The notes under the pieces: generated by a model
Told to the model about the DNA's origin: nothing
Databases searched by the model: none
Seen by the model: only the letters and a program-made list of their open reading frames with translations
Sequence record: NC_062582.1
Length of the DNA: 64,000 bases
Reading direction: 5' to 3' (one strand)
Program-made: the position numbers and the translations under genes
Part shown: one piece after another, positions 3,549-14,637 of the stretch
How the letters are laid out: every line of letters starts with the position of its first letter
Numbering within the stretch: the stretch's first letter is position 1

Positions 3549-3914
3549 TTATTTATTTTTTAGGCTGACGTACATACGTTGGATGTCCGAAAGTACACCA
3601 TCGTTAGGTATTAACAGGGTAGGTTTAACCATGCCTGTATAATAGTTACGTAAGTCTTTAGCAAACTGATTTGGGTTGGTCATTCCATTAACCCGCATGT
3701 ATACCCAGTGTAAATGTGCAGGAATAGAGCGGCCTACTAAGAACCCATAAAAGTCACCTTCGTATTGATAGTAATGGTTAGCTGGAATATCTTCACGAGT
3801 CACAAAGTGATTACGTAAGATGTTGATATGTGTTTCAACCATTAGTCTAAACTTAGGGTCATAGAACAACTCTGGTCCTGGTTGGGCCATGAGGGTCATT
3901 ATCGTGAAAGCCAT
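3549..3914 (-). CDS. Conserved small protein, possibly LysM/T4 gp53-like fold, 121 aa
   Basis: LHWVYMRVNGMTNP resembles the W-x-I-x-x-x-N-x-I-x-x-P motif of gp53/tail-X/LysM proteins; GGAG RBS on minus strand. Confidence 0.45.
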   Translation of the reverse strand: MAFTIMTLMAQPGPELFYDPKFRLMVETHINILRNHFVTREDIPANHYYQYEGDFYGFLVGRSIPAHLHWVYMRVNGMTNPNQFAKDLRNYYTGMVKPTLLIPNDGVLSDIQRMYVSLKNK

Positions 3915-3943
3915 TTGAAAACTCCATAGAATTTTTTCTAGAT

Positions 3944-3952
3944 CTATATTAT
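3944..3952 (+). promoter_or_regulatory. Candidate early promoter (TATATTAT, variant of phiKZ TATATTAC)
   Basis: CTATATTAT in AT-rich intergenic DNA upstream of a small-ORF chain; coordinates approximate. Confidence 0.4.
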
Positions 3953-3976
3953 TGATTTGTCTAAGAGGAAGCCGAA

Positions 3977-4048
3977 ATGAATACTAACTTTTATTACGAA
4001 CTGCCTATCCGTGAAGAATCCGATTACTACAAAGGTGAACGTGAATGA
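3977..4048 (+). CDS. 23-aa peptide MNTNFYYELPIREESDYYKGERE (below ORF-track cutoff)
   Basis: AAGAGGA RBS before ATG; stop overlaps next start (ATGA at 4045-4048). Confidence 0.55.
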   Translation: MNTNFYYELPIREESDYYKGERE

Positions 4049-11780: not shown

Positions 11781-11802
11781 GCCCTCTCCTTCGGGAGAGG
11801 GC
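11781..11802. terminator. Bidirectional intrinsic terminator
   Basis: GCCCTCTCC-TTCG-GGAGAGGGC with GCATAA/TTATGT outer arms and long T tract. Confidence 0.85.
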
Positions 11803-11829: not shown

Positions 11830-12330
11830 TTAAGCCACGATGTTTTGAATTTCTCGTGTAACTTGTCGTGTGGTAATACTTTCTTGCACTGACTGGGACT
11901 CAGCCATCTCAACAAAGAATCTAGCATCGCTGTAAGGCAGCTGGAAGAACTCTAAGATGTTTAACCGGGTAATGTCACCCAGTCTATAGTTAAAGTATTT
12001 CCGTTGCCACGTGCGCCTTGGACCGCCTTCAATGATGTTCTCTTTATCATGCAAGCGCATGAGATCGATAGGGTCATCATCAACATGGTCACAAATGCCA
12101 TAGTCTCTGTGATAAGCTTTGCGGGTAACCAGTTCAGCTGTAACTGGTCTTATAGCACCCATCTCATAAACGAGCGCATCGAATGCAGGGGTTTCCTGAT
12201 CAATACGCCCGAAGGTATGAAATGTAACGTGTCCATTAGGGTCTTTAGCGTCGATCTGTAATCGGCTAGACTTAGGATCGACGTTCTTATGTTCTACCCC
12301 AAGTGGGCTACTTTCCGGCCCGCCAACGTA
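11830..12330 (-). CDS. gp76-like reading frame, candidate -1 frameshift extension (GT/T4 gp51-like) of the upstream gene; first ATG at 12162
   Basis: Frame is open from 12348; no ATG/GTG/TTG before 12162. C-terminal YRLGDITRLNILEFFQLPYSDARFFVEM resembles tail-chaperone T-segment / gp51-type motifs. Confidence 0.65.
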   Translation of the reverse strand, partial: YVGGPESSPLGVEHKNVDPKSSRLQIDAKDPNGHVTFHTFGRIDQETPAFDALVYEMGAIRPVTAELVTRKAYHRDYGICDHVDDDPIDLMRLHDKENIIEGGPRRTWQRKYFNYRLGDITRLNILEFFQLPYSDARFFVEMAESQSVQESITTRQVTREIQNIVA

Positions 12331-13886
12331 AAAAACGTAATGACCATATCAATTGGAGAGATGTGACCCAGACGTTCATTGAAAGCTTTACCTTGTGGCG
12401 AATCACATACTTCACAGTTATGACTTACCAGACCAACGATAACGATTACGGATTCGTTACTGAAGTTTACAATGGCATCAGCAAACCGCTCAGAGAACTC
12501 AGGGGTAGACAGTGTGCCTTTCATGTATTCCAGAATGAGTTCTGGATCTTCAGAGAACAACTGTTCCTCAAGCGTGAGAGCTTTTTCGTCACGGTCGTAG
12601 ATTGCCTGTACCCAGTGAGAGTACTGAGTGGCAATAGTGGACTTCTTCAGTTTCTGAATATAAGCCAGACGACTGTTGCCATGTGGTGGTTCATTGAATA
12701 CGCCTTGCGACATTTCAATCAAACCGTCGTACCATTGTTGCCCAGATACTTTACGAGTAGCGATAGTCGGTTCAGCCAACTTCAGACCAATGTCACCCAG
12801 CCATACAACTTTAGCATTACCAATAGCGAAGGCTTCACGATAAGCTTTGAAGTCGTCATCGGTAGCTGGTTGGAAACGCTTAGCAATAAAACGTTTTTGA
12901 TCAGCAGAGAACACGCTATTATCGTAGTAGATAATGTTAGCCATGTTCATTTTGAAAGTAGTTACAGCAGAGCACTTGTCAGGATCTGCGATGCATGGGT
13001 TACTGTAGTTAAAACCATCAAGGTAAAGTGTGGCTGCCAGACCATGGTGGAGTGCAACTTCGTCAAAAAGAGTGATTTCATGTTCAAGGTCCGCTGGGGT
13101 ATTAAAAGATTTGTTACTACCAATTACACATTGCAATGCAAGGTTAGTAATGAGGTCAAGCATAATGAAGTCGGCATGGGAATAACTAGCACCTTTGGTT
13201 TCGGCACCCAGTGTAAGTTTCAATGCTTGGAGTTCGGTTTGCAGTGTTACCAGTTCGTCGAGGGTAGGTTGACGCAGACGCAGCCAAATACCAGAACGAG
13301 GCAGGAACGTTTCAAAGCTACCACCTTGACCAGAACGAGAGTTCAGATAAGCCAGTTGAGCTTCTTTAGAAACCTTACGGGATCTATCGTTAACTTGTTG
13401 CGGTGCACCAGGTCGCTCAAGACGCTCGTTACCAACATCGATACCATCTTGCCAATAACTACCAGCACGTTCTAGAGCACCGTATGGAGCACTCTCAAGA
13501 CTGGTGTGACGCATACCCGAAGAGATTGCAGCCAGCCATTTCTGATCACGATCAGATTCAGCCATCTTCCCTTCTTGCATCGCTTTCAGAACATCATTAC
13601 AACGATTAAGAACGTCAATAATAGTGTTAGGGTTTTCGCGAATGAAGGCGAGCAGAGGATTCGTATCTGGAATAGGAGCGACAAAAGGTTTACGTTCGTT
13701 CGAGAAATTAACGAAATTCTGGTTTGGTACAAAGATCTCACGATCAATATACTGGAGAGGTAGAAACTCATTAGGCTTTTGCCCACCATGTGCTTCTTCG
13801 ATACGGTCACCCAAGGATGCTGCTTGTTGGGTTTCGCCCCAACCTTCTGCGGTAGAGCCATCTTGTTCATCAAATTTATCTGTCAT
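12294..13886 (-). CDS. phiKZ gp77-like protein; T4 gp26-like hub / tail assembly chaperone candidate, 530 aa
   Basis: IWLRLRQPTLDELVTL, Cys pairs NPCIADPDKC and NCEVC; AAGAGG RBS. Confidence 0.55.
   Translation of the reverse strand: MTDKFDEQDGSTAEGWGETQQAASLGDRIEEAHGGQKPNEFLPLQYIDREIFVPNQNFVNFSNERKPFVAPIPDTNPLLAFIRENPNTIIDVLNRCNDVLKAMQEGKMAESDRDQKWLAAISSGMRHTSLESAPYGALERAGSYWQDGIDVGNERLERPGAPQQVNDRSRKVSKEAQLAYLNSRSGQGGSFETFLPRSGIWLRLRQPTLDELVTLQTELQALKLTLGAETKGASYSHADFIMLDLITNLALQCVIGSNKSFNTPADLEHEITLFDEVALHHGLAATLYLDGFNYSNPCIADPDKCSAVTTFKMNMANIIYYDNSVFSADQKRFIAKRFQPATDDDFKAYREAFAIGNAKVVWLGDIGLKLAEPTIATRKVSGQQWYDGLIEMSQGVFNEPPHGNSRLAYIQKLKKSTIATQYSHWVQAIYDRDEKALTLEEQLFSEDPELILEYMKGTLSTPEFSERFADAIVNFSNESVIVIVGLVSHNCEVCDSPQGKAFNERLGHISPIDMVITFFTLAGRKVAHLG
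12330..12336 (-). promoter_or_regulatory. Candidate -1 frameshift slippery site G TTT TTT
   Basis: In frame in the 530-aa gene, inside the 55-nt window where the -1 frame is already open. Confidence 0.55.
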
Positions 13887-13895
13887 GGGGTAACC

Positions 13896-14390
13896 TTATT
13901 TAATTTCGAGTTCAGTGATACCAGCTGCTTCCAGAATGTCAGCTACTTGTACAACGAGTGGTTGAATAGCACGTTCCAGATAGCCTTGCAATTCGGAATA
14001 ACCAAATGCAACTTTCTGTACCAAGGCAAAATCTTCATCAGCTACAGCACCTTTCTTCTCGACATGTTGATCGCTCAAGAGAGTGCTGGCCTCAATCAAT
14101 TGACCGATGTCAAAAGTTAGAGTACTCATGATCTTACTGAAACCTTCCGGATCACTTACTTTGCTCTTAACCAATTCCAAGTTACCTTGTACAGGCAGGA
14201 CAACCAGTGAGGTACTATTAATACCTTTCAGCAATGCCTTCTGCATTTCGGTTACAATGCTCCAGCCATCTTGGCGCAGCATTTCAGTGGCAGCTTTCTC
14301 AGTGTCAGCAGCGACCTGTTCCAAGTGATCAAAGGTAATCGGAGTTTCTTCAGTGATGTCGGTCAGAGCTACAGTAGTTTGTTCGGTCAT
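13896..14390 (-). CDS. Hypothetical protein, about 164 aa
   Basis: AAAGGA RBS before ATG 14390 (MTEQTT...) favours this start over 14540. Confidence 0.7.
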   Translation of the reverse strand: MTEQTTVALTDITEETPITFDHLEQVAADTEKAATEMLRQDGWSIVTEMQKALLKGINSTSLVVLPVQGNLELVKSKVSDPEGFSKIMSTLTFDIGQLIEASTLLSDQHVEKKGAVADEDFALVQKVAFGYSELQGYLERAIQPLVVQVADILEAAGITELEIK

Positions 14391-14637
14391 TGCGTTTGTT
14401 CCTTTATTAAAAATGGTATTAAGAGCTGCATCGATGCGACGATTATCTTCGTCGGTAGGAGGAGATAAATGTGCACACTCATGTGCATTTGGAATAATTG
14501 AAGGTTCCATTGGATTCCTATTAAATGCGTGGATTAACATAACTTTAAACTAGGTGGTATTCTTTTCCTATTAAAAGAAAGACAAAGGACCATAACCGTA
14601 TGTTAAATACATCACCCTCACAATAGGTTAACCTACT

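Follow-up and report, generated by a model that had tools for sequence, protein, structure and literature searches.

A probable programmed -1 frameshift in core gene cg18 of the phiKZ-like jumbo phages

Tail-chaperone pairs of long-tailed phages, such as lambda G/GT and P2 E/E+E', are non-virion proteins of about 100-150 amino acids (aa) that share their N-terminus and arise by a -1 frameshift near the 3' end of the first open reading frame (ORF), the short form being the main product and the long form the minor one. The lambda site needs no stimulatory structure, and P2 slips on a run of T. At the sites of dnaX (tau/gamma) and of insertion sequence (IS) transposases a tRNA slips in the -1 direction on a homopolymeric heptamer, setting a protein ratio in a proteobacterial host. 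These sites use an upstream Shine-Dalgarno-like element and a downstream hairpin, and the shifted product of dnaX is the shorter one. A stimulatory element is not needed by every known -1 frameshift site. Gene 26 of phage T4 also yields two products, in its case by internal initiation, and its protein (gp26) is needed for hub assembly and is not seen in the finished baseplate. Here we have analyzed a gene of Pseudomonas phage Phabio, a phiKZ-like jumbo phage, in which the end of a 530-aa ORF (PHABIO_121) is overlapped by a second ORF in the -1 frame, part of which is annotated as PHABIO_120. The window analyzed is a stretch of 64,000 nucleotides (nt) of record NC_062582.1, 100% identical to the Phabio record MF042360 (record position equals window position plus 62000); coordinates below are window positions.

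This core gene of nucleus-forming jumbo phages very probably makes two proteins from one message by a one-base backward slip on a T run. That PHABIO_121 and PHABIO_120 are a single recoded gene, in which a programmed and probably ribosomal -1 shift gives proteins of 530 and about 685 aa, seems likely to us. The shift would thereby join the programmed -1 frameshifts already known, with a core gene as its place in a phage family that has been studied intensively. As in the tail chaperones, the two proteins would be N-coterminal, with the shift close to where the first ORF ends, a major short form and a minor long one, and absence from the virion is likewise suggested for this type of protein. 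The 530-aa protein, however, exceeds them in size, belongs to no chaperone family, and its gene sits in a block of virion RNA polymerase and helicase genes. Since it fails the position and the family membership of these pairs, it would work like one without being one. The lambda G/GT-like chaperone proposed in an earlier sequence-only reading of this window is supported in part and as a functional analogy only: the overlapping ORFs with a conserved frameshift fit it, the modelled fold hints at gp26-like proteins, and position and family do not fit. With dnaX and the IS transposases the gene would share a -1 tRNA slip on a homopolymer, a proteobacterial host and the setting of a protein ratio, but neither of their two stimulatory elements was found at the 530-aa gene and here the shifted product is the longer one. 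Among predicted viral structures (BFVD), entries named for T4-like hub assembly resemble the model of the 530-aa protein. In contrast to T4 gp26, this protein is more than twice as long, showed no sequence-profile link to gp26 in Pfam, NCBIfam, PHROGs or the PDB and lies in another genomic context, and its two products would share the N-terminus and arise by frameshift.

The two-frame gene in Phabio and its relatives

PHABIO_121 (530 aa) and PHABIO_120 (110 aa) are labelled hypothetical proteins in GenBank. The first is chimallivirus core gene cg18, also hypothetical in the core-genome listing, with phiKZ gp77, 201phi2-1 gp136, Goslar gp081 and RAY gp267 as orthologs. The elements of the locus are the following.

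11830..13886, minus strand: the whole two-frame gene, i.e. the frame-0 ORF with the -1 ORF over its end (PHABIO_121 plus PHABIO_120 in GenBank)
13886..12294, minus strand: PHABIO_121, the frame-0 ORF of 530 aa, ending in a TAG stop
12330..12335, minus strand: T6 run, the proposed slip site; its frame-0 codons TTT TTT are Phe518-Phe519, and a G precedes it at 12336
12294..12348, minus strand: 55-nt overlap of the open frame 0 with the open -1 frame
11833..12330, minus strand: 166 codons of the -1 frame between the run and its stop, which would form the C-terminal extension in the long product
12163..12293, minus strand: unannotated stretch of 43 codons between the frame-0 stop and the first start codon, start-less and with coding-type evolution
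11830..12162, minus strand: PHABIO_120 as annotated, 110 aa from an ATG, covering the 3' two thirds of the -1 ORF
12310..12329, minus strand: about 20 nt directly 3' of the run, near-invariant in the Phabio clade including the third positions of frame 0

The stop of PHABIO_121 lies 11 codons past the T6 run. In the -1 frame a TGA at 12351-12349 (minus strand) is followed by 172 open codons (12348..11830). The sequence-only reading had described the 530-aa ORF, this TGA, the open -1 frame, the 55-nt overlap and the G plus T6 at 12336-12330, and we found all of them at these positions. It had also noted that no ATG, GTG or TTG occurs before 12162 and that no clear ribosome-binding site is present there, and our reading of the minus strand agrees. 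The earliest such codon of the -1 frame is the annotated ATG of PHABIO_120 at 12162, no Shine-Dalgarno-like motif was detected in the 18 nt 5' of it, and the start-less stretch contains only two near-cognate codons, neither of them preceded by a Shine-Dalgarno-like motif. At the composition of the window 172 open codons are expected with P ~4e-5, and the +1 frame at the same junction is open for just 6 codons. These two values, together with the recurrence of the layout in the 49 loci described below, allow chance to be rejected as the origin of the open -1 frame.

When the -1 translation was used as a tblastn query, the matches in relatives started at the T run, overlapping the end of the upstream gene. 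We read the junctions of nine Pseudomonas jumbo phages, nine phages with a split gene from Escherichia, Erwinia, Klebsiella, Burkholderia, Ralstonia and a marine host (beside the single-ORF SEGD1), three further Seoulvirus/Wellingtonvirus records plus SPN3US, three very distant members (DT01, Aeromonas D3 and Klebsiella Miami), seven metagenomic close relatives of Phabio and 27 IMG/VR loci. Removal of duplicates left 49 distinct loci, to which the following counts refer. The two-frame layout was present in all 49, at protein identities from 84% down to ~20%. They include phiKZ, 201phi2-1, PhiPA3, SPN3US and Goslar, the five phages that the sequence-only reading had singled out for comparison and all of which have the T run and the open -1 overlap, as well as RAY, RSL2, JM-2012, Miami, Aeromonas D3 and metagenomic contigs. 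The T run covers a frame-0 Phe-Phe pair of the form TTT TTY throughout (Val-Phe, GTT TTT, in one locus), and is five (n=6), six (n=23), seven (n=16) or eight (n=4) nt long. The frame-0 stop follows 8-37 codons 3' of the pair (median 11). Without exception the downstream ORF lies in the -1 frame and can be followed back across the run with no stop; the +1 frame, taken as a control, stays open over 14 codons (median). Neither in-frame stops nor a conserved start, which had been named beforehand as evidence against a shift, were found in the -1 stretch of these loci. From the run this stretch measures 149-175 codons, with the exception of phage RVTF4 (PQ015378, our L008). A single extra break in its -1 ORF was seen in no other locus, and tblastn covers the ORF in two pieces; either an error of sequencing or a true lesion could account for the break.

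The first ATG of the -1 frame is found anywhere from codon 15 to codon 140, with no conserved position, and annotators and gene callers have chosen a different start for this ORF in nearly every genome. Thus, in 201phi2-1 (positions 3581-4042 of our locus L003) it is annotated from a TTG overlapping the upstream stop, in RAY (3619-4167 of L012) from an ATG 136 nt inside the upstream gene and in phiKZ from an ATG 219 nt past it. The stretch open in both frames shrinks in relatives to the Phe pair plus at most 8 codons. In one locus (L051) a -1-frame stop ends 1 nt 5' of the pair, and the nearest frame-0 stop in any locus is 8 codons 3' of it, indicating that a homologous shift has to occur at the run itself or at most a few codons 3' of it. 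Furthermore, a profile search with the upstream protein retrieved 1,624 cluster representatives (E <= 1e-3, mutual identity <=50%). Among the best 150 of these, 149 end 8-34 residues past the Phe-Phe pair (median 13) and none has a long single-frame form.

The only record met with both parts in one frame is that of Enterobacteria phage SEGD1 (KU726251, L013), with an ORF of 795 aa. Close to the run it has a short stretch that diverges locally from its sister phages. It could be taken for a natural in-frame fusion supporting the shift, a use that we set aside since more than 30 sister Seoulvirus records, including SPN3US, Lh1B and SPAsTU, have the gene split; the single frame is probably an assembly error or a private variant.

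The choice of codons at the run and the evolution of the -1 stretch point in the same direction. Elsewhere in these ORFs Phe is encoded by TTT in 274/918 cases (30%). At the pair, 44 of 45 loci have TTT as the first codon and 36 of the 45 have it as the second, and TTC never comes first. Column conservation is 0.98-1.00 inside the run versus 0.31-0.49 at the neighbouring third positions. For Phabio and seven relatives with protein identities of 66-84%, the ratio of nonsynonymous to synonymous changes (pN/pS) was 0.25 in the 43 start-less codons, very close to the annotated part (0.24) and to the upstream gene (0.27). Variable sites of the start-less stretch fall 17/13/40 at codon positions 1/2/3 and its indels are multiples of three. 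This ratio, the excess of variation at third positions and the triplet indels indicate translation of the stretch, even though a start for it is missing in Phabio. In the overlap region pN/pS rises to 0.78, with a low pS, and we read the invariance of 12310..12329 as double-coding constraint and not as a folded element.

Both ends of the gene appear to be kept as protein. The frame-0 tail past the pair is conserved at the protein level, with synonymous changes at Leu codons, and together with the Phe pair it is held in the last predicted helix of the 530-aa protein (residues 514-529), which argues that the short product is functional too. Directly past the run, distant clades show little conservation of the -1 peptide, as a linker would. 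Beyond it, the -1 pieces of the Pseudomonas clade and of the distant clades are one domain (hhalign probability 98.6%, E 1.4e-15), with a family-wide core at about residues 54-144 of the piece. Altogether, the -1 frameshift put forward in the sequence-only reading is strongly supported by the T run, the open overlap, the lack of a conserved start, the coding evolution and the -1 domain.

Proposed slip mechanism and competing explanations

Most ribosomes would read frame 0 through the Phe-Phe pair and stop 11 codons later, giving the 530-aa protein, the last helix of which would end in the conserved short tail. A minority would slip back one base with tRNA-Phe on the T run and continue in the -1 frame for 166 further codons. 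The resulting product of about 685 aa would have its first 519 residues in common with the short one, followed by a different, conserved C-terminal domain. Such a slip would be ribosomal and infrequent, in the order of a few percent. The frame-0 TTT TTY found at the run means that tRNA-Phe can re-pair on TTT after moving one base backwards, and both frames are open there, with a long conserved -1 ORF that lacks a start of its own.

Expression data from phiKZ fit a minor, larger species that carries the -1 domain. Both gp77 and the 80-aa PHIKZ076.4, the annotated part of the -1 ORF, were detected by mass spectrometry in the tables of a Grad-seq study, with log10 abundances of 10.7 and 9.08, respectively, which corresponds to ~2% (PMC10914614). 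The PHIKZ076.4 signal peaks in gradient fractions 4-7, where RNA polymerase complexes run (PMC10914614); a protein of 9 kDa sedimenting by itself should remain closer to the top. Low, flat early transcript profiles were recorded for gp78, gp77 and 076.4, as for late structural genes and unlike the rising early genes (PMC10914614).

Several observations weigh against a ribosomal shift of this kind. The full X XXY YYZ heptamer, with a T before the pair, is present in only 21 of the 49 loci; the other 28 have a non-T base there and thus depart from the textbook form. No conserved RNA structure was detected downstream (RNAalifold, -1 kcal/mol), and folds of single sequences 3' of the run were inconsistent, with z from -3.6 to +1.8. 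A recurring long-range stem that we had seen by eye was no better than shuffles and was discarded. The GGGC/GCCC pairing 3' of the run pointed out in the sequence-only reading is present in Phabio, but even the nearest relatives do not conserve it. A Shine-Dalgarno-like tetramer upstream of the run appears in just 2 of 49 loci. With neither a conserved structure nor this element, the slip seems to depend on the run by itself. The -1 piece modelled alone folds poorly (predicted local distance difference test, pLDDT, 57). Neither a junction-spanning peptide nor the size of the long product was seen, and the ~2% of the phiKZ data is a figure not normalised for length. Finally, as the T run lies on conserved Phe codons, its register cannot separate ribosomal slippage from slippage of the polymerase.

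The same two proteins would in fact result if the phage RNA polymerase slipped on the T run and some transcripts carried a run of altered length. In its favour are a site made of T alone, up to 8 in length, the failure to detect a ribosomal stimulator, a selection of T at the Phe codons that fits equally well, and the unusual multisubunit polymerases of these phages, which are encoded next to the 530-aa gene. Runs of T5 and T6 are, however, short for efficient polymerase slippage judged from other systems, and these are the lengths found in 6 and 23 loci, respectively. In addition, in 12 loci the run ends in a C within the Phe codon, which shortens the homopolymer and keeps the re-pairing of tRNA-Phe. 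The short runs and those ending in C lead us to favour the ribosome, and slippage by the polymerase, while a possible alternative, appears considerably less probable.

If instead there were two separate genes, the downstream ORF would be translated from a lineage-specific or non-canonical start or by re-initiation, and the T run would merely spell Phe-Phe. All 34 annotated database records inspected list the two ORFs as separate genes, some have a start near the frame-0 stop (the overlapping TTG of 201phi2-1, an ATG 24 nt after the stop in D6 and Psa21), and the annotated phiKZ product was detected as a protein entry. Against this, coding sequence is conserved for 40-85 codons 5' of any ATG, GTG or TTG in Phabio, phiKZ and others, and the near-cognate codons of the start-less stretch lack Shine-Dalgarno-like motifs. 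The frame relation is -1 at each locus, with the -1 frame open back to the run every time, the TTT bias at the pair would be left unexplained, and the sedimentation of the phiKZ product is not that of a small, free protein. We consider two genes improbable. A homopolymer sequencing error, or the decay of a single ORF into a pseudogene, has in its favour that homopolymers are error-prone and that the SEGD1 record shows both parts in one frame. It would have to account for the same frame relation in 49 loci from many laboratories and platforms with runs of four different lengths, for the protein-level conservation of the frame-0 tail with its synonymous Leu changes, and for the more than 30 split sister records of SEGD1. 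On the sequence comparison, this explanation can be taken as refuted for practical purposes.

Possible role of the two products

The AlphaFold2 (AF2) model of the 530-aa protein has a pLDDT of 79.8 and a predicted template modelling (pTM) score of 0.81. The conserved motif and the Cys pairs noticed in the sequence-only reading are borne out by the family alignment. The motif, GxWxRxR...P...E, is the most conserved stretch of the protein, and C298, C305, C491 and C494 are invariant in 31 aligned orthologs. The two pairs are almost 190 residues apart and probably form a zinc site linking distant parts of the fold.

Searches for named relatives gave little. No relative with a solved structure was found by Foldseek against the PDB or by sequence and profile search of the PDB; a match to T4 gp55 (E 0.19) was attributed to chance, being not reproduced with the family profile. 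In Pfam, NCBIfam and PHROGs only unnamed phage families were hit, with no named family and no chaperone. The profile comparison suggested by the sequence-only reading, with the tail-chaperone and T4 gp26 families, yielded no match in these three collections or in the PDB, and none of 18 orthologs scanned matched a gp26-like family in Pfam or NCBIfam. In BFVD, beyond the orthologs, the model matches entries named T4-like baseplate hub assembly protein or baseplate hub subunit (E 1e-4 to 3e-3), with template modelling (TM) scores of 0.50-0.56 normalised to the target and only ~0.3 to the query; chaperone entries appear at E ~1 only. An annotator's note in GenBank record MW735835 cites T4 gp26 (GP26_BPT4, P13335) for the ortholog, and another record calls it a baseplate protein.

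The gene does not lie beside tail genes. In Phabio and in the records of 33 annotated relatives the neighbours are gp78-like, gp79-like, virion RNA polymerase and helicase genes, and in none of them does the gene lie between the tail tube and tape-measure genes, as the sequence-only reading had cautioned for Phabio with regard to the tape measure. The phiKZ virion atlas paper does not name gp77 in its text, and the records of 201phi2-1 gp136 and gp135 lack the mass-spectrometry note borne by neighbouring virion proteins, which suggests that the gp77-type protein is absent from the virion. In phiKZ the neighbour gp79, encoded on the other strand, has a position in the sedimentation map near-identical to that of the virion RNA polymerase subunit gp178 (PMC10914614), suggesting that it travels with this polymerase; the 076.4 signal is near this cluster, not inside it (PMC10914614).

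The likeliest role, weakly suggested by the modelled fold, would be that of an assembly factor that stays out of the virion, similar to T4 gp26 in baseplate hub assembly. By analogy, a fixed ratio of short to long form might then work as in the lambda G/GT pair. The conserved position beside the virion RNA polymerase genes leaves room for other roles next to this plausible hub role, and the literature searched contained no genetic or biochemical data on a need for the protein in hub or tail assembly. One may go further and suppose that gp77/cg18 is to the jumbo phages what the G/GT tail-assembly chaperone pair is to lambda, with an unrelated, T4 gp26-like protein as its basis; we offer this as a tentative and rather doubtful idea. 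If it were true, the conserved-frameshift rule of long-tailed phages would extend to the chimalliviruses, gp26-type proteins would be tape-measure or hub chaperones of large myoviruses, and the long form would bridge to a second partner via its -1-encoded domain. A further twist is that the phage nuclear RNA polymerase, and not the ribosome, may set the ratio.

Annotation and neighbouring genes

The sequence-only reading knew of no description of such a shift in phiKZ-like phages, and our literature searches, which did not cover subscription journals, found no published one either. The downstream ORF is not named in those supplementary tables of the core-genome paper that were searched. If the recoded gene is real, Chimalliviridae core gene cg18 encodes two proteins rather than one, and a conserved domain of ~160 aa belongs to it that is now scattered over small, inconsistently annotated ORFs: phiKZ 076.4, 201phi2-1 gp135, PhiPA3 gp073, Goslar gp082, RAY gp266 and the ORF after the gp77 homolog of SPN3US. 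Should the layout hold wherever the upstream protein has a match (212 phage records and 1,624 protein clusters), the annotation of these would have to be corrected. A recoding event would also join the features shared by the Chimalliviridae, it would provide a concrete handle on the cg18 protein, which may act in the baseplate hub or in tail assembly, and it would be a natural case for asking whether the ribosome or an unusual phage RNA polymerase slips.

Two further features flank the gene in Phabio.

13896..14540, minus strand: PHABIO_122, 214 aa, phiKZ gp78-like (phrog_14050), 9 nt before the 530-aa ORF
11781..11802, no strand assigned: 9-bp GC-rich hairpin between the convergent PHABIO_120 and PHABIO_119

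PHABIO_122 is syntenic with the 530-aa ORF in all relatives inspected, and from the common strand and the 9-nt gap the two probably form one transcription unit. The hairpin is likely a bidirectional terminator at the end of this unit. On one side PHABIO_122/121/120 face genes for a structural head protein and for subunits of the virion RNA polymerase, and on the opposite side lie helicase and non-virion polymerase genes.

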